A program made the position numbers and the translations under genes. Below, piece after piece: positions 3,723-64,000 of a stretch of 64,000 nt of DNA (positions are counted from its first letter, which is position 1; each line of letters begins with the position of its first letter). This stretch comes from Camelus ferus (lineage: Eukaryota), in NCBI RefSeq assembly GCF_009834535.1, contig NC_045704.1, forward strand, positions 43,586,001 through 43,650,000, read 5' to 3'. Under the pieces are notes generated by a model that saw nothing but the letters and a program-made list of their open reading frames with translations, made no database searches and was not told where the DNA came from.

Positions 3723-6292
3723 CTAGAGCACGGAGAGGTCATGGCAGGACTTGGACTTGGCGCGCAAGGCCATTTTGCGGCTGTTTCTCGCGACGATGCG
3801 GCCCAGGAAGCGCTTCGCCTTTTTGCCGAGGCTCTCTCGCCGCCGGGTACCGGCTTGCCGACGTGCGTTGGCCTCTTTGCTGTCCCTGCGCAGGCGGATC
3901 TGGCGAACGACACCTTCGAACAGCGCCTGGACATTGTGGTGCAGTGCAGCCGACGTCTCAATGAACTTGCAGTCGAAGACCACGGCGCAGGCCCGGCCCT
4001 CTGGTATGCGTGGGGACAGGCATATGTCAGTAAACAAATGGTGGGTGGGTGAGAGCCCCACTCAAACCCCGGCCACCCCAGGGCAGCTTCCACATTTGTG
4101 GAGGGGAAGCCCTGGGTCCTCCCCAGAAACAAAAGGACCCAGGCTCTTGTATGGAGGATGCATTGGGTTACCCAAATGGCAGAGTGTGCCCACGTTTAAG
4201 GAGCTCACAAAGGCCCACAAAAGAAAAGTCAGTTACTGAAATAATTTGAAGTCTGATATTTAAATGGAAGTGCTACAGTAGACAACACAGGAAAATGAGA
4301 ACTTTGTTAGGTAGCTTAGTGTTTTATGGCTTGATGTTACAGCATGATGAATGACAGATGGAATGGAGGGTGACATCACCAAATTACTGCCAGGTTCCTC
4401 TGAGGGGCTCAGGTCTGAGGGTCATAGAGGTGGATGCTGAGCACAGGATGGGTGGGTCCTTCCCAGGGGCAAGACTATACCAAGACTGGCCTGGGCCTGA
4501 AATCCAGGCTCTGCCTCCTGGCCTGGTTCCCTGAACTCTCCTCATCCCTCATCTGCCAAGCCACAGCCAAAGGGGACGGGAGAGGAGGGCCCTGAGATGG
4601 CCCAGCTCAGAGCCCAGCCACCTCCACCTCCCCTAGCACATTTGGTCCTTTCCCCAGAACTCAGGCCTTTGGGACTCCTGTGGGAGAGCAGCAGCTCTCC
4701 CCCTCTGTCCTCAAGTTTTATTCCTGAACATTTTTAGCCACCAATGATCCCCAGGGACTCAAGCTGAGTCAAGACTGAGTGGACCACGGCCCAGCCAGGA
4801 TCTCCCTCCCTTCCTGACCCACTCCCTGCTCACCATCCAAGGAGACCTCACGAGAACGCACAAGGTCGCTCTTGTTGCCCACTAGGATGATGGGCACGTC
4901 ATCTGTCTGCCGCACCCGCCGCAGCTGGACCCGAAGCTCTGAGGCCTTCTCGAAGCTGCCCTTGTCTGTCACCGAGTACACGATGACATATGCATCACCC
5001 ATGGCCATGCAGTGGCTGGGGAGCCAGCGGCCCCCATCCTAGGGAACATAGAAACATATTCACCCAACAGTCCTCATGCCCCAGCTCCCCAGCTACAAGG
5101 CCTGCACTCCCTGCAGGCCCCTACCCCCAGATCCCCCTCCCACCCTGCCCTGGGTCTCAGCCTGCATCTTACCTGCTCCCAAATGTCATAGACCATGAGT
5201 GATGCTTCTTCTCCGTCGACCATGATGGAGCGATCATATGTGTGCCCTAGGCAGGAGACCAGTAGTCAGGAGACCAGTAGTCAGGTTGCCTGCTGGCTGC
5301 CAAAAGCCCCCCTCCCTTATGAACCTGTTTTCTGTTCTGGTCACACCCTCCAACCCCTCCCCAAAGCCCCCCTAACCTTCTCCTCCACTGATGGCTGCTG
5401 TGTGGCAACAGAAGTGACAGGGCTGAGAAGTAAGGGGTGGAGAGCATGGTGTGCCTTACCCCCACCTAGACACCCATTCCCCAGGTTAGCAATGTCTTAG
5501 GTGGCCACTCTCATGCTTCCTGCCCTCCTGATGTTTGGGACCCACGTGGTTCTGACCACAGTGGCCTGAGTTAGAACAAACATCCCCTGGGGGCCTTGGT
5601 TACCTAGGACTCCTCTCCTAGAAACTGCCTCTGGCTGTGTTCTTGCTAGTCCTAACAGGGAGTCATAGCCTGTGCCCATCCTACAGAATAATCATACGTA
5701 TGCCCTGGACCTTCTACCCTAGGCATTTCTTTCTCTACCAAGGACTGGGGGTACCTTCTCCCTTAGTTTCTTCATCTGTGAAATGGGCGGGTAGAGGCGT
5801 GATTCTCAGAGTGTCATCAAAATCCCTTTGATATTTACTGCTTTTAGTCCTGCTCCCCAGTCCTGTAGCCTCCAGGCCTAACCCTGGGATTTTCCCTCCC
5901 TTGAATAGTCCCAGCCCCTCACCTGCGGCCTCTGCTTCAGGGCCATCCTCTACACCACCGAAAATGCGCGCCAGAGCGCTTTTGCCGACGCCAGGCGCGC
6001 CCAGCAGCAACACCTTGTAAACGCTCTCGTCTGAGTCGCTGCCTCCGGAGCTGAGAGAGTCGGAGGAGCCCTCGGGCCAGTCCACCCTCGGACCCTGGGC
6101 CCCTGTTCCGGCCTCCGCCGTTGTTAGAGCTCCCGGAGTCAGCGCTGCCTGCAGATCGCGCTCGTCCACCGGCATGCTTCGGCGGTGCAGAGGGGGCGCG
6201 GGGCCCCAGGGTGTGCTGCCCCGACGGCGTTCGCGCTCGCGGCCCCCGCCACGGCTCCCTCCCGCTCCGCTTCCGCCGCCGTTCAGAGTCAT
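3723..6292 (-). CDS. RRAD: GTP-binding protein RAD (RGK family), 308 aa, intact
   Basis: Coding exons 6292-5923, 5246-5173, 5038-4834, 4000-3723 (370+74+205+278=927 nt), all GT-AG. Motifs: MTLNGGGSGAGG, G1 GAPGVGKS, RGK-type DIWEQ, NKSD, C-terminal KSKSCHDLSVL. Confidence 0.98.
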
Positions 6293-6760
6293 AGCGTCCG
6301 CCGCCGTCTGGGGAACAGAATCGGATGGCCGCGTAAACCGCAGTGGAGACGGACTGGGAGGCTAGATCCGGCTCAGGCAAGATGCTCGGGGCCGAGGACC
6401 TGCCACAGAAGGTCCTTGCGCCCTGACTTGTGACCCATCCTCCTGACTGATGTATCCGCAATCCAGATGGTGCGACCACCCACACCCAGCTCCGCCGAGT
6501 ACACTCACCTACTCACACACGGACACGGTCGAAACAAGTCCAGGCTCGGCTACAATCCACTCACAGACCCAGGCGCGGACACTCGAAGCTGCCGCAGCCG
6601 CCGCCGTCTCACTCCGCACTGGGTCCGGGCTCCAGAGCCTCCTATTTAAGCCTTTGCCCGCCCCCGCCCCCCCACCCCCGCACTCGCCCCCGTCCACGCG
6701 GCGCGGGGGCTGACGTGTCCATCCCCCTCCCCCCGGGGGAATCCCCCACCCTCCTCCTAG
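5950..6760 (-). promoter_or_regulatory. RRAD CpG island/promoter with TATA-like box, GC boxes/G4 tract and kB site
   Basis: High CpG density. CTTAAATAGG at 6641-6650, C-runs at 6657-6691, TGACGTG at 6711-6717, GGGGGAATCCCCC at 6735-6747. Confidence 0.75.
6509..6620 (-). other. RRAD: RRAD non-coding exon 1
   Basis: Donor GAGTAG|gtgagt at 6509/6508; exon 2 acceptor ccccag| at 6307; TATA-like TTAAATA at 6643-6649. TSS is approximate. Confidence 0.65.
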
Positions 6761-6836
6761 GCCCTCACATCCACCGATAGCCCACCCCACCCGCCAGGGC
6801 AGGGCAGGGAGAAACTCTGCAGACAAAGCCCGGTCT

Positions 6837-6888
6837 GAGAGAGAGAGAGAGAGAGAGAGAGAGTGTGTGTGTGTGTGTGTGTGTGTGT
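6837..6888. repeat. Compound microsatellite (GA)13(GT)13
   Basis: Read directly. Confidence 0.95.
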
Positions 6889-7371
6889 AGGAGGGAGAAG
6901 GAAGGGGAGTATGTGAATTGACCGGGGAAGTGGAGGAGGCATTAGGTCTGGCCGTTTAAAAGCGAATTCTTTGCCTTTCCCCTAGTCCGGGCCTGTTGCC
7001 CAATGAAGCAGACCAGTTACTGGTATGACAGACTTCCCTCTTCTCTGCCCATTCCCCACTGGCCCATATCTGAACTAGAATTTAGGGGTCCTAAATCCAG
7101 GCTTCTAGCCGGTCTCACTCTCCTCCCTGACCTTGGGAATTGAAGATTCTGCCTGGCAAGCTTGCCCTTCTAGGTAAGGGTTAGTGTCACCTGAGCCCTG
7201 GGTTGGGGGGGGGGTGCCTTGGAAAGCTGTTTGGGGGAGGGGGCAAGGAAGGGAGGCCCTCTGGCAGTGTGTTTCAGGTAGAGGTGTGAGCCTGAATCTT
7301 GGGGCAGGAATACAGGCCCAGAGAGGGAAAAGGATTAACTCAGCACCACCTCCCCCTCAGCACCCTCAAGG

Positions 7372-7474
7372 CAGCTGCCAGCAACTCTGCTAAAAATACC
7401 TGGCCCTGGTCATTCCACTCCTGGGCTGGAAGTTACCCAAAGTTGGGGAAATCCTGGCAGACAGGTGTCAGATG
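7372..7474. promoter_or_regulatory. Candidate muscle enhancer module (E-box, MEF2-like, M-CAT)
   Basis: CAGCTG 7372-7377, CTAAAAATAC 7390-7399, CATTCCA 7411-7417, CAGGTG 7462-7467, CAGATG 7469-7474. Confidence 0.45.
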
Positions 7475-9355
7475 CCCATAGGAGCAGATAGGGGTGGGAC
7501 TATACCAGGGTCAGGGCTGGCTCCAGCCACTCTACGAGTCTTCAGTGTTTCCTTCTTTCCCTTTAGTCTCATACTAGACTTGCTGTTCAAGGCACACGCA
7601 GGGCCTGGATGTTCAGACTCCCATCCAAGAGGGGCATAGTTACAGAGAATGGTTGGAGTCAGGGGTGGAGGTGGGGTTAGCCGCCACTGCCCAGAGATTA
7701 GCCCTTCCTCAGACCTAGGGTGGGTGCTGGGGCACAGATGGGAGGAGATGTAATGAGGAGGCTTGGTTTCTAGTCCTGACTGCCTCTAGGCTCCTGGGTC
7801 TTCCTTCCAGCCTCAGGATGCCCAGCTCTAAATTGGGCCTGACTTATTCCTCACTTGCTCACATTTGGGGTGCGTGAGGATTGGGGGCAGGCAGGCTGTG
7901 AGGTACTTTGTGATGGGGATCTGGTATCAGACTTACATTTGATTGTGATGAGTGTGGTGGGGTTGGGGGGCACCCATTCAGGGCTCAGGTGACATCATGG
8001 ATGGGTGGATCCTAGTGGGTTGCTGTAGGTTATCATGGAGATCTGGGTCAGGGCTCTCTGGCTGCTGCATCAGTTTCCTTGGCAACATCTGAGAGAGACT
8101 TGGAATGAGGTGGTCCTGGCTAGATGAATGTTAGAGGGTTCATGCAGGCCCCTTTGGTTCTTGAGGTCCTCAAAGTAGGCAAGGCTGAACTAAGGGATGG
8201 TGTATACATTTGTGTTCTATACATGGCCTGGGGGATCTTGGAGGCCTGGGCAACCCCTTGCAGGCTCTAGCTTCCTGGACAACGTCCAGTAGGAAGAGAG
8301 AGTCATGGGTTGAGCCTCCCATCAAAGAACAAAAGTCTCAAGCGCTTGCAAACCACTTCCCATCAGGAATCCTGGATGGGCTGCCTTTGACCCCTCCTAA
8401 CTGCCTTACACATGACCTTGCCACTGACAAGAGCCCTTGGATGTCCAGCACAGGGTGGGTGTGGGGCTAGCTGGACCCTTCTAAGCAGGGAGCCATGCAA
8501 GGAATTAGGGCTGGGTTTCCCCTCTGATAATCTAAGCTCTTGACCTCAGCAGTGCTTCCTCATTGCCAAGGGAACTGCATCCACATGGGGCCACTCAGGC
8601 CCCAGGTATTCCCCAACAGGCCAGACACACCACAATCATCAGTATGGCCAGTGGCCCCTGGGAACCTTACGAGGACATGACCTTAAGACACCCCCATTCC
8701 CAATTCCTGGTTCTCTCAGTTTTCTGGGCTGAGCTTAACTGTCCAGAAGGAGCAGACTGAGGCTGGAATACCCCTAGGATAGCCCAGTCTTCAAATCCCA
8801 GCTCTGCACCTTGCTAGCTGTTTCACCTCTGCCCATGTAGCTTGGCTGAGCCTCAGTTCCCTCCTGTGTAGAACAGGGATAATGTCCCCATGACGGTTGT
8901 TTTAAGACACAAATAACATGAAATGCAGAGGTAAAGTGGTTGGCACATGTCTGGCATATAGTAATATCTCAATATGAGCACTTTTATTATCATTCTTGGT
9001 TGGACTGGACCAAGAATGAATCTAAGGGCCCTTTCCTGCTTCTTCTTTCCTGCTTCTGCTCTGTTCTCTCCAGAATGGTGATCTGCCCAGGAGAGGAGCA
9101 GTTGCAGATACCTCTCTCCCTCTACCCCATACACACCTTCTGTCTGTGGGACCCCATGCCCTTCCCCCTCCCTCAGATAGCAAAATGCTACAAAGAGGAC
9201 TTGGCTGGATTTCAGTAACCCAAGCTCTCCTCACACCACAGCCCCCATGCCCCAGTTCTTCTGTTCTTTTCTGTCTCCATTCATTCATTATTCCACTTAC
9301 TGTGTGCCAGGCCCTTGTGCTTCAGGCATAATGATGGGCAGAAATGAACATAGTT

Positions 9356-16859: not shown

Positions 16860-17520
16860 TTATGATTTTTTAAAAACAATGATTTAAATAAGGTTTATAC
16901 TTTAAACATTGGTAGATGTACTTCTTTTAATAACAAATTTGAGATATAATTCACATAGCATAACTTTCACCCATTTAAAGTGGTTTTTAGTATATTCAGA
17001 GTTCATCACATCAATTCCCCTTTCGCCCCAACCTCAGCAGATGGGTTGCTTTCTGTCTNNNNNNNNNNNNNNNNNNNNNNNNNNNNNNNNNNNNNNNNNN
17101 NNNNNNNNNNNNNNNNNNNNNNNNNNNNNNNNNNNNNNNNNNNNNNNNNNNNNNNNNNNNNNNNNNNNNNNNNNNNNNNNNNNNNNNNNNNNNNNNNNNN
17201 NNNNNNNNNNNNNNNNNNNNNNNNNNNNNNNNNNNNNNNNNNNNNNNNNNNNNNNNNNNNNNNNNNNNNNNNNNNNNNNNNNNNNNNNNNNNNNNNNNNN
17301 NNNNNNNNNNNNNNNNNNNNNNNNNNNNNNNNNNNNNNNNNNNNNNNNNNNNNNNNNNNNNNNNNNNNNNNNNNNNNNNNNNNNNNNNNNNNNNNTTTTG
17401 AAAAACTGTCAGAATATCTTCCAAAGCACCTGCACCATTTTCCCTTCCCACTAGCAATGTATGAATGTCCTAGTTTTTCTACGTCCTTTCCAACATTTTT
17501 ATTGTCTTTTTGAAGTATTT
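16860..17520 (-). mobile_element. L1 fragment spanning an assembly gap
   Basis: tttgagatataattcacatagcataa... and ccattttcccttcccactagcaatgtatg are L1-like. Confidence 0.6.
17059..17395. other. Assembly gap (337 N)
   Basis: N run. Confidence 1.
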
Positions 17521-25539: not shown

Positions 25540-26220
25540 TTTTTAACAGCTTTGTTGTAGAATAATTTACATACAATCATATTCACCCATTTTAGATGTA
25601 TAGTTTGATAAATTTGGATAAATGTATAAGACACACAACTACTAAGTTTTAGGGTGCATTTGTTGCTCCAAAATTTCCTTTATGACCCTTTGCACTGCCC
25701 TCACCCTGACCCACACAACCACTAAACCGCTTTCTGTCGCTATAGTTTGCCTTTTCCAAGTGTCATAGAAATGGAATCATCTTTTTACTGGCTTCTGTCT
25801 CTTAGTACACTGTTTTTGAGATTCAGCCAGTAGTTCTTCTCTTTTCTTGCTGAGTAGTATTCTATACATGACATGCCACATTTTATGCATTCACCCCTTG
25901 ATGGACATTTGAGTGATTTCTATTTTTTGTCTATTTTTAATAAAGTTCNNNNNNNNNNNNNNNNNNNNNNNNNNNNNNNNNNNNNNNNNNNNNNNNNNNN
26001 NNNNNNNNNNNNNNNNNNNNNNNNNNNNNNNNNNNNNNNNNNNNNNNNNNNNNNNNNNNNNNNNNNNNNNNNNNNNNNTTTCAAAGCAACTACCATTTTT
26101 GCATGCCCACCAGCATATATGCGGGTTCCAATTGCTCTATATTCTCACCAGCACTTGGTCTTATCAGTCTTTTACGTTTGATTAATTTTAATGGGTATGT
26201 AGTGGTATCTCATTGTGGTG
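25540..26220 (-). mobile_element. L1 fragment containing gap 25949-26078
   Basis: ccccttgatggacatttgag and gtatctcattgtggt are L1 motifs. Confidence 0.65.
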
Positions 26221-27144: not shown

Positions 27145-27890
27145 ATGGAAAAGAACTTGTCCATTTTTCAAAACATTAAACATAGAGTTACCATATCACC
27201 GGCAANNNNNNNNNNNNNNNNNNNNNNNNNNNNNNNNNNNNNNNNNNNNNNNNNNNNNNNNNNNNNNNNNNNNNNNNNNNNNNNNNNNNNNNNNNNNNNN
27301 NNNNNNNNNNNNNNNNNNNNNNNNNNNNNNNNNNNNNNNNNNNNNNNNNNNNNNNNNTACAGCCCTACGGTGAAATATTACTTAGCCATAAAAAGGAACA
27401 AAGTACAGGGAGGGAGGGTGTAGCTCAGTGGTTGAGTGCGTGCTTAGCATGCGCAAGGTCCTGGGTTCAATCTCCAGTACCTTCGTTAAAATAAAAAAAA
27501 AGGAACAAAGTACTGATAAGTGCTACAACTTGGATGAACCATAAAAACATGCTGCTAAGTGAAAGAAAACAGACACAAAAGCTCACATATTATATGATTG
27601 CTTTTATGTGACATATCCAGAATAGGTATATCTATAGAGGCAGAAAGTTTATTAATGATTATCAGGTTATCAGGGGAGGTGGGGAGAGGCATGGTAGGTA
27701 AGGGGCAGGGGTAGGAACAGCAAGTAACTAATTAATGGGTACAGGGTGTTTTGCTGGGGTAATGAAAGTATTTTGTAACTAGAGCAATATGGTAGTTGCA
27801 CAAAATTGCAAATACACTAAATGCCACTGAACTGTATACTTTATAATGGTCAGTTGTATGTTATGTGAATTTAACCTCAATTTAAAAAAA
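27145..27890 (+). mobile_element. L1 3' fragment containing gap 27206-27357 and a SINE
   Basis: aacattaaacatagagttaccatat, ctaagtgaaagaaaacagacacaaaa; ends tgaatttaacctcaatttaaaaaaa. Confidence 0.7.
27407..27497 (+). mobile_element. tRNA-derived SINE (vic-1-like) with TSD
   Basis: gggtgtagctcagtggttgagtgcgtgcttagcatg...ggttcaatctccag plus A tail. TSD aaaaggaacaaagtac at 27391-27406 and ~27498-27513. Confidence 0.88.
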
Positions 27891-32628: not shown

Positions 32629-34585
32629 ATGGCAGAAGAGTGTTAAGGGGAAACACTGCCCTGGACTCTGATAGGCAGCCTCACCCTGATACTGTCAACT
32701 TGGAGTTGTGAGTGTAAAAGAGAGCCAACCTTGCTGGTACCCAAGACCTGGGCAAACCTGCCTAGTGTGGAGTGCTATGTCCAGGACTTTGTAGCCAAAG
32801 ATGCTTCTCTGGAATTGAGTGCTGCCCACCCTACAGCTGGAGCAGATGTTCCCTCCACCCGCCTTGTTCTCCAAGAACAAAACTGTAAATTGTTCAGCCA
32901 ACCAGATTTCTACTAAATATCCTTGGTGAAAGCATTAGCCCTGGAAAGTAATTCATACCGCTCGTGGAGACCTCTCCACTTCTTACGTATTGCCTTTGGC
33001 ATAACACTTTCTGAAATTGCTCTGCCAATTTAAACTGCTGCCAGCAACTTGATTCTATAGGTTTGATTGCAACTATACCAGCATTTGCAGACCATAATTT
33101 TAGAAATATCAACTTTATTGAGATATAATTTGCATACCATAAAATTTACCCTTTTAAGAGTACAATTCAGTGGTTTTGAGTATACTCACAAAGTTGCACA
33201 ATTATCCCACTATCTTCTTCCAGGACATTTGCATTACCCTAAAAAGAAGTCTGTACCCATTAGCTGTCACTTCTCATTCCCCCTCCCCCCCAGCCCCTGG
33301 CAATCAGGAATCTACTTTCTGTCTCTGATCTACTTTCTGTGAAATCTATGGATTTGCCTATTCTGGACATTTCATATAAATAGAATCATACAATATATGG
33401 TTTTTGGTGTCTGACTTCTTTTACCTAGCATAATGTTTTCAAGGTTCATCCATGGTGTAGCATGTATCACTACTTCATTCTTTTTTATGGCTGGATAGTC
33501 CACTGTATGGATACACCACATTCTGTTTATCCAACCATCCATTGCTAGACAGTTGGGTTGTTTCTACCTTCTTGGCCATTATGGATTATCCTACTATAAA
33601 CACTCATGTACCAGTTTTTGTGCAAATATATGACAATTTCTCTTGGTTATATACTTAGGAATGGAATTACTGGGTCATATAGTAACTCTATGTTTTTAAT
33701 CATTTTAGGAACTGCCAAACTATTTTCCAAAGTAACTGCACCATTTTCCATTCCCCCCAGCAGTGTATGAGGATTTCAGTTACTCTGCATCCTTGCCAAC
33801 GCTTGTTATTATCTCTCGTTTTGGGTATAGTCATCCCAGGGGGTGTGCAGTGGTATCTCATTGTGGTTTTGAGTTGCACTTCCCTAATGACTAAAACGTT
33901 GAGCATCTTTTCATGTGCTTATTGGCTATTTTTATAATATTCTTTGGAGAAATGTCTTCTGAAATCCTTTGCCCATTTTCAAATTGGATTGTTTGTCTTT
34001 TTATTGTTGAGTTATAAATTTTTCATGTGTTCTAGATACAAGTCCCTTATAAGATACATGATTTTTGAATGTTTTTCCCATTCTCTGAGCTTTTTCACTT
34101 TGTTGTCAGTATTCTTCACAACACAAAAACTATTTTGTGAAGTTCAATTCATTTTTTCTTTGGTTGCTTGGCCTTTTAGTGTCATATCTAAGAAATGATT
34201 GCCTAATCCAAAGTCATAAATCTGTATGTCTTCTTCTAAGAATTTTATAGTTCTAGCCAATACATTTAGGTCTAGATTCATTTGAAGTTAATTTTTGTAT
34301 ATAGTATGAGTTAAGGATTCTTTTGCATGTGGTTATTCAGTTGTCCCTGCATCATTTGTTGAACAAATTATTCTTTCCTTATTTGAACTGTCTTGGTACC
34401 CTTATTGAAAATCAGTTGACCATGAATGAAGGAATTATTTCTGGACTTCGCACTCTACTTCATTAATTTCTATGTCTATCCTTATGCCACTGCCGCACTG
34501 TCTTGATTACTGCAGTTTTGTAGGAAGTTTTGAAATAGGAAAGTGTGACTCCTCCAACTTTGTTTGTTTGTTTGTTTGTTTGTAT

Positions 34586-38100: not shown

Positions 38101-40289
38101 TACTGATATTGGTATGATGATGAGCCTTTCCTACCAAAAATAGGACCTGACCAGGCTGTGGGTACCTAATGCTTATCCAGCCCTCTCTCCACAGATTCCA
38201 TCTTTTTCTATCTGTTCCAGCATCGACCCAGTTCTTTCGTGAAGTTCAAGCCGGCCTGGGTGCGGGCTGACCATGGGGCTGAGATGGCCTTCCTGTTCGG
38301 GGGTCCTTTCCTCACGGATGAGAGCTCCATGCTGGGTAAGGATGGACAGGCTGCCAGGCTCCGGGCGCGGCTTGCAGGAACAGAGGTCTCTGGTCAGCAC
38401 AGGGGACCCTTGGGTCTCCTCCAGGACCCATTTGACCCTGATCTAGATCTGCCCTCCCATAGCCTTTCCAGAAGCCACAGAGGAGGAGAAGCAGCTGAGC
38501 CTCACCATGATGGCCCAGTGGACCCACTTTGCCCGGACAGGGTGAGTGAGCCAGCAGGCATGCCTGGCTTTGGGCCTGGACTACTCAGAGCTGCCTCCTG
38601 GGGAGCAATACAGAGGCCTTTGTCTTCATTCATTCCTCCCACCCAGGAATCCCAATGACAGCGGGCTGCCTCTTTGGCCCTCCTTCAACCATTCAGAGCA
38701 ATATCTGGAAATCGGCCTGGTGCCACGGGTCAGCCAGAAGCTAAGGAAGGCCCGAATGCAGTTCTGGGCAGAGACACTTCCCACCAAGATCCAGCAGTGG
38801 CAGCAGAAGATGAAGGTCAGGAAGGCCCGGGAGGATCTCTAAGGCAGGGCCTGGGTCTTCTGGGCTCAGGGCCAACCCTAGGGGTGGGCAAGTCTCAGTG
38901 GGGCAGCCTCCTTCTCCCCCTGCTAAGAAACTTTAACTCAAACCAGGCTGATGAGTAGTCATGCCTCCTAAAGCTTCAGCCCCTCCATGACTGGCAATGT
39001 GCTCCTTTGAAATGTCATCTGCTCCCATAGAGGGGGGCTTTGCACAAACTTCCTCTCCCCACTTTTTTCATGGAAATTTCAGTTCATATTTCAAGCTTCC
39101 CAAAGGACCCTCCTCCTCCAGGACCTGCTTCAGGCCTGGCCCTATCTGTGTCCGTTACAGCTTGGCCCACTCTAGGCTAGCATTGTCTGTGTCTGTGTTT
39201 CTCTCCCACTCTGAGGAGTTCTCTGAGCATGGAAATCAGCCTGACCCCGTTCTGCATCTCTCATGCCAGGATTGGGCAGGACCTGGAGTCAGAGGATGTT
39301 TGGTGAATGAGTGAAAGACTGAGAAAGTATCAGAATGGTGGCTGCTGGACGTGAACCCAGGCCATTTAGGCACCAAAGCTATGCTTAATCCTGCACAGAT
39401 ATTGTCCCCCTGGCCAGAAGGGTGGATGGACTCCAGGGGCAGAAACTTGGGGTAGGGGAGTCCTGAAGCATCAGGGGATCCAGCCTAGAACAGATCTTAG
39501 CCCCCAGAAGCCTCTGATTAGAGCTGGGGGAGGTCCCTTTTTCCATGCTTGGCCCTTGCACAAGACAGAACAGAGTTCAACAGGGCCAGAACCCTGATCC
39601 TTGGACATGAGATGCAAGCTTCCCAGCCCTAGGGCCTCATCCCTTTAGGCCTGGTGGGGCTGCTTCCTCCCCACTCCAGCTATAGAAGACCAACTTCCAG
39701 GGGAGCTCAGCACAACTCTCAGAGCACCTATCAGGACACAGGAGAACAAGATAGGTGAGAGTGTCTGGACTGGTGCAACAGTCAAGTTGTCACAGAGAAA
39801 AGAAGAGATCTACCTGCTCAGGCTACAATAGGTGAAAAGCAGCCAGAGGATTTTGAGTAGGAGCACACATTTCTTCTTTTGCTGATCAATACACCATTCC
39901 CTTGTAACATCTGGACTTTAATACATAGCCCAGTGACTTCCCCCACCCCGACTACCCCATCCTACCTACTCCAATCTCACGTATACCCTTCCTCAGTCAG
40001 ACTAAATTCCTGGCTCCTAATGGTTACGTGAAAACCACTTACAGTTGGGACCAGTTCTGTTCTGGGAAGTTCGCTTGGGGCAGTAAAGAGAATCATAAAC
40101 CAGAGGGGTTCTGAGTGGTGCCACTCCCCTGCTCAAGAGCTCCCAGTGAATTCCTGTTACCCTTAGGGCAAGTCTAAGTTCTTTACGTGGCATCGAAGGG
40201 CTCCTCTTCTTATCCTCTTCTCTCCACCGAGGAAGCTTGTCCCGACAAGCTGGCAGACACCCAACAGGTAAATAGGCCACAATCACACA

Positions 40290-40720
40290 GTGTGTCACTG
40301 GGGACACAAAGGGCTGTAGGAGCCGGAGGCATAGACCAGCCTGACTAGGGGGACAGGGGAGATGGGACATCTAAGCTGAGACCTGAAGGACAAGCAGAGG
40401 TTGTACAGGCCAGAGGAGTAGCCTCGAGGGGTGGGGAGCAGGGGGAAAGGGTATTCCTGGCAGAAGGAACAGCAAGAACAAAGGCCTGGAGGGTGAGATG
40501 TGCTGAGAAAACACAATTCTGTAGGGCTGGAGAGGTCGGCAAAGAGCAGACTGGGAGAGGCCTTGTGGGCTGGGATGGGGCATGGACTAGAGGGTAATGG
40601 AGAGCCTTGTTAAGGTTTTAACCAGGGTATGACATGAGCAGTTTGGATGTGGCGGTGAGAGTGGGGCCAGGAGGGGGCCAATGTGGGCTTCCAGGTGGGC
40701 AGAAGGCCCAGTGGGCTCTA
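40290..40720 (+). mobile_element. L2 fragment
   Basis: aagctgagacctgaagga, gtattcctggcagaaggaacagcaagaacaaaggcctgga motifs. Confidence 0.6.
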
Positions 40721-42829
40721 GATTTAGGAATCAACAGACAGACCTGGTAGCTGACAGGACCCAAAGACAAGGGAAGAAAAACTCCCCAGGGCTGCCTGGG
40801 AGTGAGCCAGACCAGGCTGGGGATCAAAAGCTCGTGTTTTGACCATTCTGGGTGTATGAAGAGGCCTCTTCCTCCAGGCCTGAGGATGCACCACACCTGG
40901 CAGCCACGGGGAGGCGGAGTGGACCATCAGATTTGGTGCCATCATTGCCAGAGGGCTCTGAGGGGACAGGCAAGCCTGCTGGTGAGGCATCAGTCCCTGT
41001 TCTGCTGCCAGCTTTCCTGCTCCCCCTCCCTCCCCCGCACCCCCTAAACCGCCCAGCTTCTAGGGTTTTCTCCACACAGAGAGGGAGAGGAATGGCCTGG
41101 CCCCAGGGGAGTGCTCGCACAAGGTAGGTGCTCCTGGGATTCCAGTCCTCTGGCCTCTCTATTCTCCCTTCCCTGGGCCACTGCTTATGGAACTCCCATC
41201 CCCTGCCCGCCATGATGTCTTCTACCCACTGAGGGCCCCACCCTGAGGGCTCAGCAGCCATGGAGCTGAGGGGAGTGAGCCAGGGAGCACCCACAAACTC
41301 AGATGGGCCAGGCCCTGAAGTGGGGAGCTGGTGGACCCAGGGAGCCTCCCTATGGCAGGGTCACAGGAAAGGCCCTGTGAGCCATTTGAGTGTGTGAGCA
41401 CCACGGGGTACTGCAGGATCAGATGTGCACACCTGGGCTAGCCCCCGGACAAGGGACTCGTAGCTGCTCCCAAAAGACACAGACAAGTGTGTACATACCC
41501 AGCGCAAAACTTAGTTACTCACACACATGGGCAGTCTCACATATACATGTCCTCACTAGCAGGGTTCCAATCCAGTTTAGCAATTTACTAGTGTTTATCT
41601 TTGAGCAAGTTAGTTAGCTTCTTTGTGCCTTAGTTTTCCCACTTGTAAAATGGGTGCAATGATATTATTTCCCATGGATCCGCTGTGAGGACTGAACAAT
41701 AATTAGCTGGAAAGTTCTGAGAATAGTGCCTGACACACAGCAAATGCTCAGTAATTTCTCCCTGGTATAGGTATGGACACAGACTTCAATTGCACTGTCT
41801 AAAAACATCATATGGCTCCCTTGACCACAGTTCAAAGATAGAGGGATTAGGGGATGTTTAGGGAGTGTCATAATTTTAAGGCTCTTCCACCTTAGAATAA
41901 CTCTTGGGCCCTCGTCTACCCAGAAGAGGGGGCAGATAGAGCCCTGCGTTGTCCTGAATGGCAGGCTGAGTGCCCTCTGGGGGTCTCTGGCCCTCCCTGC
42001 GGGTCTCAGGGAAGCCATCATCCAAATTTGTCCTGATACTGCCTCCAGCTCCTCCTCTTGGATTTTAGGTGCACACTGCCTCTCAGAACTTGGTTCCCAG
42101 CCCAGCTTGCCCAGGCCCTGGGAAAGGTGTTCTGAGAACAGAGAGACACTTGGCATGGGGACACCAGCTCTGTTACCTGAGAACAGTGGTGCCCGCACTT
42201 CACTCCTTCCTCCACCCTGGCCCTTGGACTTCCCTTCCCACTAGCCCCCTCACGCCTAGAGGTATTACTGCCCACCAGAGGCTCACTTGATGTGGGGTTG
42301 CCGCTCCCTACTGACCCTGAGCTGACCTCTTTGATTCTGGGTGTTCTTGGCTGGGGCCCAGGGCACCAGGGAATCAGCTGGCCAGACCCCACCACCAGAA
42401 GTCTTCCTGAACTCTCTGCTGTGCTGAAGCTCACTCACATCCATCCTCTCCCTCAGGTCTCTGGACCTGAGGAGTTTCTCTCGTCCTGAATAGTCCTCTG
42501 ACTTTTGAGTAATCCTCTGGGGTCCTGAGTGGATCCCCACTTTACAGTTGAAAAAACTGAGAATCCGAGAGGAGAAGTGCCTTGCCTGTGGCCATACAGA
42601 GAATAAGGACAGAGCCAGGACTCAGATTCACGTCTCTGGGCCTCCAAATTGCATGTCCTTACCCCTCCAGAATATGCCCTCATGTCTAGAGCAAGCTTTC
42701 CATCTGCTAGAGTTGGGGTCTAAAGGGCTGATGTGGATGGAGGAACTGGGATTCCAAGAGGCCAGGGTGCAGGAGTTTTGCAACAGCTTCAGGTAGCACA
42801 GCCCACAGAGAGATGGCAGGGTCTTCACC

Positions 42830-43210
42830 TTCAAGAAGATTCATAAAAAGGACTTTTTGACAAGTGCAGGTTTCTTTTAAATCATACTGCTGAGCTGGTT
42901 TCTCAGATGGTAAAAAACCACCACCAAATGGAAGAAATTAACTACTTGATGATCATGAGCACGTAGCCCCCAGACCTTCTGGCACCTAAGGACCAATCAT
43001 CCTCAGCCCATCAGAGAATTGTGCACAGCTGATCACCTACTTTGGGACACCCCTCCCTCAGCTGGCCTTTAAAAATGCTCAGCTGAAACCATTTGAGGGG
43101 TTCAGGGCTTTGGGGGCCTTGCTTGGCCCAGCAATAAACCTTTCTCTGCTTCAAAAAAATAGGCCTCACATGTCTGCATAGGACCCCTCTGTCCTTTGGG
43201 CCCAAACTCT
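42830..43210 (+). mobile_element. ERV1-class solo LTR
   Basis: gagaattgtgcacagctgatcac; TATA-like TTTAAAAA at 43068-43075; AATAAAcctttctctgc at 43133-43138. Exact ends not resolved. Confidence 0.6.
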
Positions 43211-44421
43211 AGGCATTAGTGTTGGTCAGTGTGCACAGTGCTCCCCCACCCAGACTACAGGTCCTCACCGGCCACAGACCAGGTCTGCAAGTGTCAGGAA
43301 GCTTGCAGGGTAAAGGGCTGTGTTGAGCCTCCCTACCCACAAGGGGTCAGCATCCAGGCCATCCTTCTCCTTAGTCTCCAGACTCCATTACTCCCCAGAA
43401 CCATCTGAGGCCTCAAGGAAGTGAAGCTCTGAACTAGGCCATAAACTCCTCTTGGATAAGGTAGGTAGTGGCACGAGCACTGGGGCTCTCAGGCTCCCTA
43501 GGTGACCAGGCAGCCCCCAGAGCAGACCTGGTCAACACAGGAGTCTCAGAGCGGCAAAGTCAAATAGGTGGGTAGGTGGTCAGAATCCTATCATTCCTGC
43601 CTGGTCCCGCCTACTGCAGGGACTTCTGCGTAGATGAGGGGTGAGGCAGCGCCAGGGCAAGCCTCCAGGAGCTGGTGTCCAGCCTCTGCCAGACCAGTCC
43701 CTGGGATGGGAGCTGCCTAAAGTCACCACCCTGAAGGACTGGAGAAATCTGACTTGCAGTATGACTAGGACAAGCCCCTGTCAGGCTCTCTGTATCCCTC
43801 GTACCAAAATATAGATAAGGCTCCTGGCCCTCCCCAAGCCTCCCAGAGCCTCGCCCACACCTCAGTCCCCATGATCTCCATTCCTGCAGGGCTGCGCTCT
43901 GGCCCCAGTGTGGCCAGCTGGAGGCCCACCTGGGTCTCAGCCTGTGCCTGGGGAGTGATGCTGGAAATGCCAGGCCAGGTTTCTGGGAAAGAGTTCAGGT
44001 TCCCTTTTTACACAATACGCTAGGAAGACTGGTCTCATGCAGGAGGCTGCAGGGGTTGGGCTCTGTCTTGTAGGAGCATGGCCCATTCAGAAAGATACCC
44101 TGGAAGGGGATGAACTGAGTTTTGGAGGATAACTAGGTGTTCACTTGGTTGACAATGCAAGGAAGAGCATTCCACTCAGAGGGAACAGCATGAGAAAAGG
44201 CCCCATCCTTTTTCTCCTACTTGCACTAAGCTGCCTTCCTCTGTGGTGGTGCAACTCACACTTCCTTTGGGACCTTGGCCAGATCATTTCCTCACTCTAG
44301 GTCTCAGTTTCCTGACCTATACAACAGGAATAATGACAATGGTGATGACAATGACAGTAATAAAGACATTTGGGAAGAGCCTTGTCTGGGCCAGATCTAA
44401 GATTCTGATATGGAGCACTGG

Positions 44422-44809
44422 GTGACTCTTCTCCCGAGTCCCCCGGCATTCTCTGTTTTTGAGGGGAGACCAAGGCCCCATCTGATCCACTGTTGAACTT
44501 TACACGTACATAGACGTGTCTGGAAAGTGACATGGGCTCTCTATTTAGGTCAGATCGCAGGGTGAAGCCAAGGTCCTAGAGAAAGAAGGAGCCAGCTCAG
44601 CAGCTGGGTCTGGGATGAAGGCAGAGAGCATGGTTCTGGGCCCTCCAGGGTTCTGACCTGACCTCCCACCCACAGAGGATGGTAAAGGGTACCTTTGAGG
44701 GAGGACAAATCATCTCACTGTTGCTGAGATCCTGGGCCCAAGCAGCTGGGCTGTGGGAAGACCCTCACCAGAATATCTCCAAATGGGAGTAGTTACCCTT
44801 CTCCATTCC
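44422..44809 (+). repeat. Inverted repeat, left arm (388 bp)
   Basis: Reverse complement of 46527-46914; 381/388 identical by manual alignment. Confidence 0.95.
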
Positions 44810-44869
44810 TGAGGACTGAGTCACATCCAAGTTGCCAGGAAGTAAGTTTGAGAGCCCATGGGGCATGGA

Positions 44870-46160
44870 GGGACACATGTTTTTGTGTGGACATATATCT
44901 TCATTTCTCTTGGAAATCTATATACGTAGGAGGGAAATTGCTAGGTTATATGGTAACTCTTGTCTTTCATCACTTGGGGAACTGCCAGACTGTGCTCCAA
45001 AGTGGCTGCACCATTTTACATTCCCACCAGAAGTCAATGAGAATTTAGATTTATCCACTTCCACGGCAGCATTTATTATCTGACTTTTTAATTTTAACCA
45101 CCCTAATGGATATAAAGTGGTACCTGATTTGGGCTTGATTTGCATTTCCCGATGGCTAATGATACTGAATATTTTTCCATGTGTTGGTTTCCTTTTAAAT
45201 ATACTCCTTGGAGAAATAGCTCTTCAGATCCTTTGCCCATTTTTGAATTGGGTTGTTAGTCTTTTTGTTGTTGAATTGCAAGAATTCTTTATATATTCTG
45301 AATGCAAGTTCCGTAACAGATTTATGATTTACAAACACTTTCTCCATTTCTGTGGGTTGTTTTCGACTTTCTTCACTCTTTTGCATGTGGCTATCTAGTT
45401 GCCCCAACAACATTTGTTGAAAAGACCATTCTTTTGCCCATTAAACTGGCTTGGCATCCTTGTTGAAAATCAGCTGTTCATAGATAAGCGGATTTTTTTA
45501 ATGAATTCTCAATTTTATTCCATTGATCTATATGTCCAACTTATGCCAGTACTACCCTCTCTTGATTACCATTTCTTTGTAATAAGTTTTAAGATAGATA
45601 ACTATGAGTTCTACTTTATCCTTTTTTGTTAAATGAAATGCTCTTTTTATTTTATTTTTTACTTTTTTCCCCTTAGCTGAGGCACTGAGGATTGAACCTA
45701 GGGCCTCTTGCCTGCCAAGCACATGCTCTATCACTAAACTATACCCCCACCCCGCTTCTGCTTTATTTTTATTTTGGGGGGGAGAGGTTGTTAGGTTTAC
45801 TTGTTTATTTATTTTTAGAGGAGGTACTGAGGATTGAATCCAGGATCTCGTACATACTGAGCATGCATTCTACCACTTGAGCTATACCCTCCCCCCATCT
45901 TTTGCTTTATTCTTGTTCAAGATTATTTTGGCTATTCTAGGTCCTATGCAATTCCATATGAATTTTAGAATCTGGTTGTCAATTTTCTACCAAGAAATTG
46001 AGATTTCATATAGGGATGTCATTGAATCTATAGGTCAGTTTGGATAGTATTACCATCTTAACAATATTAAGTCCTCATCCATGAACATGGGAGGTTTTCC
46101 TATTCATTTCGATCTACTTTAACTTCTTATAACAATGTTTTGTAGTTTTCAGAGTATACA
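44870..46160 (-). mobile_element. L1 fragment in the inverted-repeat spacer with two tandem SINEs (~45645-45753, ~45763-45896)
   Basis: Antisense L1 motifs (ggctgcaccattttacattcccaccag). Each SINE has ggattgaac/atccagg and ends in ctataccc. Confidence 0.8.
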
Positions 46161-46526
46161 ATTTGGACTTTTTTTGGTTTGGGAGCCTCTGGGTTGTGTA
46201 GGGGCCCTAGGAGTTATTGAATTCACAGCTGAGTTGAGGCTGTGCTTCTGGAGCAGCCACATGTGGCTGCATAAGTGGCCAGCACACTGGCTGAGTCCCT
46301 CTCAGCAGGGGATCCTAGCTGTGTCCACCATCCATGGCTTGGTCTTGGCTGCACTCTCCTACCCTCATCTCCCCTATGCTACCCTTGGCACTGGCCTCCA
46401 GGCCATCTCAATGCTGGTCATCCATGAATCCCTGCTAGCCTAAAGGTCCACAAGTTTCCTTGATGGTGCCATCCTGATAGATAAACACTCTCCCTGACTC
46501 TGCAGCTATTACCTTTGATGTTCTTT

Positions 46527-46914
46527 GGAATGGAGAAGGGTAACTACTCCCATTTGGAGATATTCTGGTGAGGGTCTTCCCACAGCCCAGCTGCTTGGGC
46601 CCAGGATCTCAGCAACAGTGAGATGATTTGTCCTCCCTCAAAGGTACCCTTTACCATCCTCTGTGGGTGGGAGGTCAGGTCAGAACCCTGGAGGGCCCAG
46701 AACCATGCTCTCTGCCTTCATCCCAGACCCAGCTGCTGAGCTGGCTCCTTCTTTCTCTAGGACCTTGGCTTCACCCTGCGATCTGACCTAAATAGAGAGC
46801 CCATGTCACTTTCCAGACATGTCTATGTACGTGTAAAGTTCAACAGTGGATCAGATGGGGCCTTGGTCTCCTCTTAAAAACAGAGGATGCTGGGAGACTC
46901 AGGAGAAGAGTCAC
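46527..46914 (-). repeat. Inverted repeat, right arm (388 bp)
   Basis: Reverse complement of 44422-44809. Confidence 0.95.
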
Positions 46915-47859
46915 GTCATATTACATACAGGCTCCTACCCCTAAGGTAATGTTGCACCAGAGCCACCTGGCTGACCCAGCTTCCTGTTCAACATTCCCTG
47001 TGTCCCTTGTGAGCACTGGACGGGGCCACATGAGTCCTAGGCACTCCACTGAGGAATCTGGCCTGGCACGACTGCCACCCATATGGACCAGGGGAAAGGT
47101 TGTTTCTTCTCCCAGGGAGAGGTGGCAGGAGTGGAGCCAGCTGTTGGGAGGATCTGTCCTTAAGACCCACACAGAACTGGCCAAGTTGCTGCACAGCTGG
47201 ATTGGGGAGTCTACCTGTGACGAGCCCCAGGCCTGGCAGGTGGACTCATATTCTTGTCTGCCCTATCCACCACCCCTTTCCTTGTCCACACCACAGCTTG
47301 GCCCTTCCTTTGAGTGACACATGCCTAGTGCATATAGATAAACCAACCTTGTCAGAGCCTGGGCAGCAGAAACAAGTGGCTGTCACCCACCTAGACTGGG
47401 CTTCATACTCCTATTGATAGCCCACAGGGAGGCCAGCAGAGTGAGGTAATGAGAAGGGAAATATGGTCCAGAAAGAGGAACGTGGTCCAGGCCTGATGGA
47501 GCTGCTGGTAGTACCTACTTCTCTGGTCCTGCCTTCCTTGTCCTCCCACTCCTGCCCCTTTAAACCCCACAGTGACAGTAAACTCTCCACTGATGTTGGT
47601 TAAAGAAAATATGGAAAATACAGAAAAGTTAAAGGAGAAAAAGGAGAAAAAAAATCAATGTCACTGATGACTGAACAACTCAGAGCCAACCACAGACACC
47701 ATTTGGGCATCAGTCCTTCCAGTCTGTTACTCTAGACATCTCTGGAGTATTTTGGTGTATACTTTCTGTGGCCAATATGGTCATAGTCAATATACAATTT
47801 CAAATTCTGCCTTCTCAAGTTATTAAATCACATCAGCCTCTTCCCAAGTACTGATGACA

Positions 47860-48110
47860 ACAGTTGACACAATGGGTTTTCCCTGTTTTAAGTGCTTGAC
47901 CTACGTTACAGCAGTTAACCCTCACTACAACCCTATGAGATAAGTACTATCATTATGCAGAATTTACAGATGGAAAAACTGAGGTCCAGAGAAGTCAAGC
48001 AATTCTCCCAAGGTCACACAGCTCAAAAGTGGCAGTGCTGGGATTGAAACCCAGCAGCCTGGCTCAGAGCAACCACACTAAGCCATCGGCTGCTTTGGAG
48101 TCTTAGGGAG
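47860..48110 (+). mobile_element. MIR (one example; further MIR-like pieces near 1900, 8800, 22850, 26750, 35800, 36650, 37900, 41600, 57700, 61470)
   Basis: Core tttacagatggaaaaactgaggtccagagaagtcaagc...ccaaggtcacacagct. Confidence 0.75.
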
Positions 48111-50088
48111 CATGATATTATTGACCATGTAGTGTATATTATATTCTGTAGATGTAACATTCCTTCTTCACCCATTCCCTTTAGTTGTATTGAGATGAGG
48201 CTATTGTCAACAAGGCTATAGAACACTCATCATGTAAACAACTTTTTGTGTGTCTTGGATGATCTCCCAGACCAAATTTCTCAGTCAAAGGAGCAGTTTT
48301 AAGACTCTTGCTCTATGTTATTCAGTGACCTTAGGAAAGGCTGCATTATTCATATGCCCACTATCAGAGGATGAAGGCTCCTACTTTGCCAACAGGGAAG
48401 AACTTTCAGGGAGGGGACGCTGATGTGTCAACCAAGATCTCAGGCTGCAGTGGTCAGGAAGGTCCCCAAGCCACATCAGCACGTGAGAATTTTGTAGAAA
48501 ATGGTTTGAGGACCGTTTCCAGAATTCCCGTACCCCTCAGCCACTCAAGAGAGTGTGGAGGGGGAAGGAGTTAGGTGAGAGATGTTCTTTGGACAGGGAT
48601 GTTGTCTCACTGTGAATCCTCACCCCACTTTCTTCCCCTCAAGCTAGGGAATCCTTTTTCATGAGACCATCGGGGAGCCTGATAGGTGCTACCCACCGTG
48701 AGGAGGCTCAGCCAACTGGAGCCTGACTTCACCCAAAGGAAATATAGCAGCTTGTGACCATATAGGGTAGGATAGAGGGGCTGTAATGAGATGGGCCGTG
48801 GCCCTGCTAGGGCAGGCAAAGGATGTTGGAAGTTTGCCCAGGTAGACTCTGCAGAATTGGGGTTGGGGGAGGTGTCACCTTGGGCCCTCAGAGGGGCATA
48901 GGGCCCAGGAAGCAACGTTAGGCAGAGAATGCCACATTCCTTAAGACTGAGGAAGGGACACAGGATGGAAACTGGGGGAGAGGAGTCCTGAGGAAAGGGC
49001 ATTTCTGAAGAATTCACAAAACTGGCCATGAGAAAAGGAGTGAGAATTAACCATCTGCCAGGCCTACAGAGCAGGAGGCCAGGGATCAAGTAAGAACAGT
49101 GCTGGTCCCCTGAGCTTTCCCCTCCGCTGATTCTATACTGCTGGGGAGAGGAATCAAAGGAGCCCAGCACATCCCTTTTTCCTCAAAGGTGGGACAGGAC
49201 TCCAGGCTTTGGTGGGAGATAGGGAGGGGACCAGAATTACTTTTGAATGAAGATGGAACTGCCCTCTTCTCCCCCTCACATGCTCTTGCAGCTCCAGATT
49301 TCAGATAGGTCTCCCCCTTAGCCTGGATGACTCCTCAGCCTTCACCTAGAAGACTGGATCTTCTCCAGGGAACCTTTCTTCCCTGCTCACCATCACCGGG
49401 CTCTGGACTCCACTCCCAAATCATGATTGCTTCCAGATCCAGCTGCCCCAGCGGGATGGTGAGCCTGTGAAGGTAGCGACCATGTAGGAAGGCAGCTGTG
49501 CTTGCCAGGCACCAGCAGCACACATTAGCAACCACACAGGATGGCTCCCCAGGACTGCTACACCTGCACCGAGACCACTGCTCCATCACAGCCCTGGCTG
49601 AGAAAGTCAAGATGTGTGAGGAAGCGTGAGGGGGTGCCTGGAGAAGAGACTGGACAAAGCAGAGGGGAGCAGGGGAGCCTGAGGCCTTTGAATCCACAGG
49701 GAGGAAACCTAGGGTCTAGCAACCAGGGGCCCAGGTGTTCTGCCCCAACCTTAGCACCTATTGTGTGCCCAAAGCTTGACTCACACTATCTCAACATTAT
49801 GATCATTGCGCAGATGAGCAATCTTTGCAGGGATTGCAGGCTGGTCAGTTTTTTGAAGAGCCAAGATCATCTAGATCATCTATGGTGACCTGTCACCCCA
49901 AGGCAGAGACAAAGCTGTGGGCTGGTCAGACTATGCACAATTTCTCCCATCTCCGTACCTGCTCTTGGTGACCGAAGGAAAATACAAGTAGGACTGCCCA
50001 GTACTCACACGCCACATACACAGCTCTTATCTGACATCTGCGGTACAGACATCATTGCAGCCCGTGGCAGGAGCTAGAAAGCTGAAGC

Positions 50089-63356
<13,268 letters not shown>

Positions 63357-64000
63357 GTCCTGTGGAGGCTCCCTGTTGCTTCCAGGCCAGAGCCAGAGCC
63401 TTAGTCTGTTTGGGGCCCTGAACCATTCCCTTCAGCCTGACATCCCATGATGCTCACCTGTCTCACTGACCATCAGGTTAGTCCAGGCCCTTTCACTGCC
63501 ATACTGTGGGCTACCAGTTCTCAGAACAAATGCTTCTCTCCCTTCTCCAAATCCTTCCACCCATTAAGGTCAACTTGAAGCCACTTCTTATGGGAATTCC
63601 ACCCAGACTGCCACTGCCCCTATCATTACACCAGCTTGGACTTACTATTCATCTCACTCAACCTTGTGCCTGTTCACATTGGCCTGAGCCCTTGGGCAGG
63701 TTATATGTTACAAGAAGTGAAGTTTTGATAGCTTGAGATCTTCTCCCCCTTCCTACACATCTCCCGCAGGGCCCCTCCAAAGCCAGGGATGGTCCTCAAT
63801 AAAAACATGTTGACTTGCCCTGAATTTCTCCTTCTGTAAAATGGATGGATGAACCACATGGTTTCTCTATTTGAACCCTTAGAGGAAGGGAGCATTGCTG
63901 CCTGCTCCTTGTCGGGCTGAGCCTGCTATGCTACACTCAGTCAACGGGAGCTGCCGCAAAGTTGCCTGCACTGCAGAGCACTTAGTTTTTTTTCTTCATT

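Follow-up and report, generated by a model that had tools for sequence, protein, structure and literature searches.

A short inverted duplication upstream of camelid CES4A with a site pattern that points to gene conversion between its arms

The genome of Camelus ferus carries, a little over 3 kb upstream of CES4A, a small inverted repeat that most probably originated as an inverted duplication in the camelid lineage and whose core seems to have been kept nearly identical by repeated gene conversion from one arm to the other, a reading to which we assign a probability of roughly 85%. The repeat lies in a 64-kb stretch of contig NC_045704.1 (positions 43,586,001 to 43,650,000, hereafter the window), and all coordinates below are positions in the window unless another locus is named. 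Here we describe its structure and age, identify the ancestral arm and document the sites at which the arms evolve in concert, and we infer the molecular pathway of conversion. The palindrome is small, autosomal and non-coding, and its arms look neutral, with no function indicated.

Structure of the inverted repeat

An automated repeat search of positions 43000-48500 returned a single inverted pair, 44422-44816 and 46520-46914, at 97% complementarity. Base-by-base comparison puts the clean homology at 388 bp, and taken together the search and the comparison define a left arm at 44422-44809 and a right arm at 46527-46914 (388 bp per arm, 98.2% identical) on either side of a 1717-bp spacer. The arms differ at seven positions, every one a transition, and six of these fall in the outer 43 bp. 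The mismatches are as follows (left arm/right arm):

44435 C/T
44441 C/T
44445 G/A
44450 T/C
44461 G/A
44464 G/A
44516 G/A

The last of these, at 44516, sits in a CpG, and the inner 293 bp (44517-44809) contains no difference between the arms. If mismatches were placed uniformly at random over 388 bp, the probability of finding six of seven within 43 bp of either end would be 1.2e-5. An earlier reading made from the letters of the window (the sequence-only reading) had reported the same arm coordinates, the seven transitions and their distribution, the CpG at 44516, the identical 293-bp core and the length of the spacer, and all of its numbers were exact.

The features of the locus, from left to right, are:

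44380-44421, forward strand: degenerate outer extension of the left copy, similar to the orthologous lynx and deer sequence immediately beyond the right arm
44422-44464, forward strand: outer zone of the left arm, which appears mostly to escape conversion and holds six of the seven mismatches
44465-44809, forward strand: homogenised core of the left arm (345 bp), with a single difference from the right arm, at 44516
44810-44880, no strand assigned: 71-bp stretch between the left arm and the L1-like fragment, without a homologue in the lynx or deer loci
44881-45626, forward strand: first part of an old L1-like fragment, orthologous to 4770-5504 of the lynx locus (L009)
45627-45904, no strand assigned: 278-bp block absent from lynx, with two tRNA-derived SINE copies placed by self-similarity at about 45651-45773 and 45796-45917
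45905-46526, forward strand: rest of the L1-like fragment and about 350-370 bp of unique DNA, continuous with the right arm in lynx
46527-46871, reverse strand: homogenised core of the right arm (ancestral copy, still at its original site)
46872-46914, reverse strand: outer zone of the right arm, which appears mostly to escape conversion
46915-46945, reverse strand: right flank beside the arm; compared with lynx, deer and the left copy it shows deletions of 7 bp and 2 bp as well as clustered substitutions
50089-64000, forward strand: CES4A gene, with the annotated start taken from an identical C. ferus record and the gene continuing beyond the end of the window

Identity between the left and right copies differs by zone:

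Core, 345 bp: 99.7%
Outer arm zone, 43 bp: 86%
Degenerate extension, about 40 bp: about half, with indels

There is no third copy of the arm in the 64-kb window, and an Rfam search of the arms matched no family. Look-ups of open reading frames around the repeat junctions gave no result beyond one contig of about 1 kb from the Logan collection.

Presence of the repeat across camelids

Orthologous loci were reached through CES4A: the exon at 56998-57153 led to a possum CES4A representative, and from there a homologue search and cluster lists led to the other loci. The CES4A loci of alpaca, three Camelus assemblies, fallow deer and lynx were compared, each taken with 10 kb of upstream flank. The possum locus was left out as too distant, and a second dromedary assembly covers the right arm only.

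The repeat is complete, with its two arms, four unchanged junctions and a collinear spacer, in a C. ferus record (GCA_009834535.1, 100% identical to window 40089-52000), in a second Camelus assembly that is probably C. bactrianus (99.75% identity to the window), in dromedary (99.5%) and in alpaca (about 96-97%). A repeat found at four camelid loci with the same junctions is therefore not an assembly artefact, and it predates the divergence of Old World from New World camelids. The sequence-only reading had proposed a comparison with the orthologous alpaca and camel loci and had named an assembly artefact as the result that would overturn it; the repeat is there in all of them with unchanged junctions, and the two arms in the Camelus, dromedary and alpaca assemblies exclude the artefact.

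Many public sequencing runs from at least six studies, under two organism labels and with no PacBio run listed, contain 0.88-0.96 of the 31-mers, canonical k-mers being blind to the number of arms and to the orientation of the spacer. Only about 5% of these words separate one arm from two, so that fractions in this range would be compatible with a spurious arm, or with a core homogenised by mis-mapped reads during assembly or polishing. Against such an artefact stand five independent assemblies of four species, in which both arms and the four junctions recur, and a Logan short-read contig from a further run (SRR34793922) that matches 45871-46871 at 100% and spans the junction between spacer and right arm. 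Moreover, single differences within the core are preserved and reproduced across assemblies: the one at 44516 occurs in two assemblies and one at 44591 in two independent dromedary assemblies, and the identity of the core is therefore not a product of polishing. We regard an artefact as scarcely credible; the camel inverted repeat is a real structure and not an assembly error.

Origin and age of the two arms

The locus of Lynx canadensis (L009) aligns with the camel sequence on the same strand in three blocks, which pair 44881-45626 with lynx 4770-5504, 45905-46748 with lynx 5492-6309 and 46807-48549 with lynx 6819-8571. The second block is one HSP that crosses the 46526/46527 boundary, and the alignments run uninterrupted across both boundaries of the right arm. 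Lynx has a single copy of the arm: the left arm matches only the same lynx site as the right arm, in reverse, and there is no second copy in the lynx CES3-CES4A interval. In lynx, then, one unbroken stretch takes in the L1-like fragment, some 350 bp of unique DNA, the right arm and the flank to its right; it follows that the right arm is the ancestral one and that the left arm was derived from it as an inverted copy. On these alignments the arms appear to be paralogues from one duplication rather than two insertions of a mobile element. The possibility, raised in the sequence-only reading, that a young multicopy repeat had inserted twice is excluded by the continuity of the right arm with single-copy lynx DNA and by the junctions common to camelids.

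In the fallow deer (Dama dama) locus (L007), too, no break separates the outer part of the right arm from the right flank. About 40 bp (L007 7506-7547) stands there in place of 3.9 kb of the camel sequence (42816-46742). This gap is a deletion in the deer lineage, because the L1 and the inner arm sequence are present at this place in lynx; deer, having no equivalent of the interval, is therefore uninformative on the left copy.

The duplication is thus bracketed in time: it came after the split between carnivores and artiodactyls and before the divergence of Old World and New World camelids, which a review dates to 11-25 Mya (PMC4884201). A comparison of the left flank with the inverted right flank for traces of a larger original duplication gave chance-level matches only. 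About 510 bp inside the lynx orthologue of the arm (L009 6310-6818), between the equivalents of 46748 and 46807, is without a camel counterpart and is presumably a lynx or carnivore insertion.

Other modes of origin were considered and rejected. A DNA transposon or foldback element with terminal inverted repeats is ruled out by the presence of the right arm and spacer at the orthologous lynx site; no target-site duplication is seen at 44421/44422 and 46914/46915. An inversion through staggered breaks, which would leave flanking inverted duplications, is ruled out by the spacer, which is collinear with that of lynx and on the same strand.

The outer edge of the homology

The resemblance of the left copy to outgroup sequence does not stop at the limit of the arm. 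BLAST alignments of the left arm to lynx and deer extend to 44394 and 44397, respectively, and about 22 of the 29 positions in 44393-44421 match lynx in multiple and pairwise alignments. On the other side, the 7-bp deletion in the right flank is two bases from the right arm, and the changes in that flank are common to all camelids examined. Given the outward continuation of the left copy and the deletions in the right flank, the 44422/46914 edge is therefore a secondary heterology and not the duplication breakpoint, and the true breakpoint lies near 44380-44394. The limits given in the sequence-only reading stand as the edge of the clean repeat; they do not mark the end of homology, which continues into a degenerate extension of about 30-40 bp with indels. 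Judged by its position, the 7-bp deletion may act as a barrier to conversion tracts.

Concerted evolution of the arms

All camelid arms are 388 bp long and free of gaps, so that their columns can be compared directly; 15 of the columns are variable. In the outer 30 bp or so, 44441, 44445 and 44450 have one state in all left arms and another in all right arms, in Camelus and alpaca alike. These differences are therefore older than the split between the two and have never been erased. The 345-bp core shows the opposite arrangement. The camelid site table contains no arm-specific core difference common to several species, and at four core sites (44506, 44510, 44613 and 44679) both arms of all Camelus share one state and both alpaca arms another. 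With lynx as the outgroup, 44679 changed in Camelus and 44613 (a G>T transversion) changed in alpaca; both lineages have therefore spread a new substitution to the second arm. Counted as concerted versus paralogous sites, the core stands at 4/0 and the outer zone at 0/3 (Fisher's exact test, p = 0.03).

The amount of divergence gives a second line of evidence. Camel and alpaca differ by substitution at 2.77% of flank and spacer positions (182/6560), so that without conversion since before their split at least 9.6 differences would be expected between the two arms over the 345-bp core. The observed numbers are one in C. ferus, one in the second Camelus assembly, two in dromedary and one in alpaca (Poisson P(<=1) = 7e-4). 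Within a species the core arms thus differ at 1-2 sites, compared with five between the camel and alpaca orthologues.

Individual sites suggest where and in which direction conversion may have acted. At 44464 the left arms have G, the right arms of Camelus have A, as do the outgroups, and the alpaca right arm has G, a pattern that indicates a probable left-to-right conversion in alpaca. At 44516 the left arm reads G and the right arm A in C. ferus and in the second Camelus assembly, and the two arms agree in dromedary, with A, and in alpaca, with G. This would indicate either conversion in opposite directions or parallel CpG changes; 44516 and 44506 are both in CpG contexts, where parallel mutation is plausible. 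From these sites, conversion tracts appear to end repeatedly between 44450 and 44516, that is, 30-95 bp from the 7-bp indel. Single differences still stand between the dromedary arms at 44524 (left arm) and 44591 (right arm), the latter seen again in the second dromedary assembly. Dromedary and Bactrian camel separated 5-8 My ago (PMC4884201), and because single differences have persisted through that divergence, conversion is slow on this scale.

A gradient of identity could also have been laid down by the duplication itself, if error-prone synthesis after a template switch (MMBIR-type) had produced a recent copy that underwent no later conversion. With lynx and deer as outgroup, the derived left copy accounts for four of the five old changes at outer sites (44441, 44445, 44450 and 44464), some of which could have arisen during the copying; four against one is not a significant excess. 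However, the copy is older than the camel-alpaca split, yet it shows only 1-2 core differences where at least 9.6 are expected, and a one-off event cannot yield four substitutions that are each common to both arms within a lineage. We consider this account very unlikely, and a one-off error-prone duplication as the sole cause is ruled out by the presence of the repeat in alpaca together with the concerted sites.

Purifying selection on both arms, were they for instance two copies of a regulatory element or the paired strands of a hairpin RNA, is another way in which similarity might be maintained instead of conversion. The arms are 3-6 kb upstream of CES4A, and camel-alpaca divergence in the core (5/345, or 1.45%) is somewhat under the 2.77% of the flanks, a reduction that is not significant (Poisson P about 0.08). 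Selection of this kind would predict no change, rather than the identical change in both arms that we observe. Identity to lynx is 73-75% in the arm as against 72-77% in the flanks, most of the region is deleted in deer, and the arms are without a match in Rfam. All this makes selection a highly improbable explanation.

Arm-to-arm conversion in an old inverted duplication accounts for the cross-species site patterns, and this part of the sequence-only reading is borne out by them; recurrent inversion of the spacer, which it had offered as an alternative, finds no support. It had gone on to suggest a flip-flop polymorphism of the spacer near CES4A. Under that proposal, recurrent crossing-over between the arms would flip the 1.7-kb segment in camel populations, with conversion as a by-product, and the orientation might affect the regulation of CES4A. 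In principle 345 bp of perfect inverted homology could offer non-allelic homologous recombination (NAHR) a substrate. In primates, inversions mediated by repeats frequently recur (PMC8327919, PMC3961182), and about 50% of primate X-palindrome spacers differ in orientation between species (PMC8327919). In the camelids, however, five spacer-spanning assemblies from four species (effectively three independent lineages) all have one orientation: C. ferus, the second Camelus assembly, dromedary and alpaca share with lynx the orientation that is ancestral. Palindromes known to flip have arms 20 to 300 times longer, and neither the arms described here nor the spacer are better conserved with lynx than the flanks are (72-77%). 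Crossing-over alone, moreover, flips the spacer and swaps the inner parts of the arms but does not homogenise them. A flip-flop spacer is accordingly a quite improbable source of the pattern. There is a small chance that the 345-bp core suffices for occasional crossing-over, and that the 1.7-kb spacer exists in both orientations in living camel or alpaca populations, which would make it a tiny natural invertible segment about 3 kb upstream of CES4A.

The informative sites are few. The camel repeat shows the defining features of an inverted duplication that evolves in concert by arm-to-arm conversion.

Spacer, flanks and CES4A

The sequence-only reading had described the spacer as an old L1 with two SINEs and about 370 bp of other sequence, and this description holds: the L1-like part is common to camel and lynx, and the SINE pair sits in the block that lynx lacks. 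We take the fragment to be L1 partly from recognition of its sequence, together with its multicopy nature and its orthology with lynx. A copy 71% identical to it is present elsewhere in the window, at 33615-34572. Pfam gave no match for the open reading frames of the spacer. Inside the first spacer SINE, Rfam reports a tRNA-like match at 45677-45748 on the reverse strand, with 28.7 bits where the gathering score is 29; this is what a tRNA-derived SINE should give. The alpaca locus (L003) has about 141 bp more than camel (L003 4661-4801) at 44874/44875, at the left end of the L1-like fragment and inside the spacer; this is an indel between camelid lineages beside the left arm.

To the left of the repeat, the roughly 4 kb at 40346-44393 has no homologue in the lynx CES3-CES4A interval, and deer matches only 41691-42815. 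The stretch at 42816-44379, where the deer match has ended, is GC-rich, unique within the window and without a counterpart in lynx. The window also contains three runs of N in its CES2/CES3 part (17059-17395, 25949-26078 and 27206-27357).

To the right, the annotated start of CES4A at 50089 is 3175 bp beyond the right arm, in line with the distance of about 3 kb estimated from the sequence alone. The CES4A exon at 56998-57153 encodes GQSSG as its nucleophile-elbow motif. Other carboxylesterases have GESAG at this position. The form GQS[SA]G also occurs in CES4A of alpaca, dromedary, deer, cattle, lynx, possum, mole, rabbit and mouse, and it is therefore a trait of the family and not a lesion in camel. 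The repeat is without evident bearing on CES4A function.

A possible history of the locus

We propose that a segment of about 430 bp, 3.2 kb upstream of CES4A, gave rise to an inverted copy on the lineage towards camelids, later than the split from carnivores but earlier than the separation of Old World camels and alpaca. This copy would have come to lie some 1.4-1.7 kb farther upstream, beyond the old L1. Intrachromosomal (non-allelic) gene conversion would since then have repeatedly overwritten one arm with the other, so that a new substitution in the core would either be lost again or reach the second arm as well. Next to the right arm, a small deletion may have created a block of non-homology near the outer end, with conversion tracts then stopping some 30-95 bp short of it. 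The outer 40 bp or so of the arms, together with the degenerate extension, would be left to diverge freely, while the 345-bp core would stay nearly identical.

Gene conversion between inverted repeats has been documented mostly for sex-chromosome palindromes of tens of kilobases. The camel locus points to the same process on an autosome, in arms of less than 400 bp that have no gene content, operating since before the split of Old and New World camelids. Old arm-specific differences survive only within about 45 bp of the 7-bp indel. With the boundary of the converted zone so well resolved, the locus therefore offers a compact natural example of heterology that would limit conversion tracts and of a palindrome eroding from its edge. 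It could help to measure the minimum length at which a repeat still evolves in concert over more than 10 million years, and the way in which a small indel halts conversion tracts.

Comparison with known palindromes and inversions

In the staggered-break model an inversion is left with inverted duplications at its ends, and the segment between them is expected to run opposite to the ancestral orientation (Ranz et al., 2007, PMC1885836). As in those inversions, the camel segment is bracketed by an inverted duplication; unlike them, it is collinear with lynx. The locus also resembles the repeat-flanked inversions described in 2014 (PMC3961182) in having two inverted repeats around a unique segment, with NAHR as a possible outcome. 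Those inversions span 5.1-226 kb, compared with a spacer of 1.7 kb here, and in contrast to them both orientations were not found among the camelid assemblies.

The closest parallels are the human Y palindromes P1-P8 and the X palindromes of primates and mouse, whose arms are kept more than 99% identical by arm-to-arm gene conversion (PMC8327919, PMC3723533, PMC8600007). Large mammalian palindromes are defined by arms of at least 8 kb and at least 99% identity (PMC8327919); the camel arms, at 388 bp and 98.2% identity (99.7% in the core), fall outside this definition and are more than twenty times shorter. Unlike the large sex-chromosome palindromes, the camel locus is autosomal, its arms are free of genes and it bears no sign of selection. 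Unlike the primate X palindromes, in about 50% of which the spacer differs in orientation from species to species, its spacer is not inverted between the species compared. Its rate of conversion also appears to be much lower, because single differences persist over the 5-8 My of dromedary/Bactrian divergence. In its organization and behaviour it is nevertheless like them: inverted arms surround a unique spacer, identity from arm to arm exceeds orthologous identity between species, the structure persists for millions of years, and the probable mechanism is intrachromatid non-allelic gene conversion. The process itself is well known, and the camel locus is a small, clean new instance of it.
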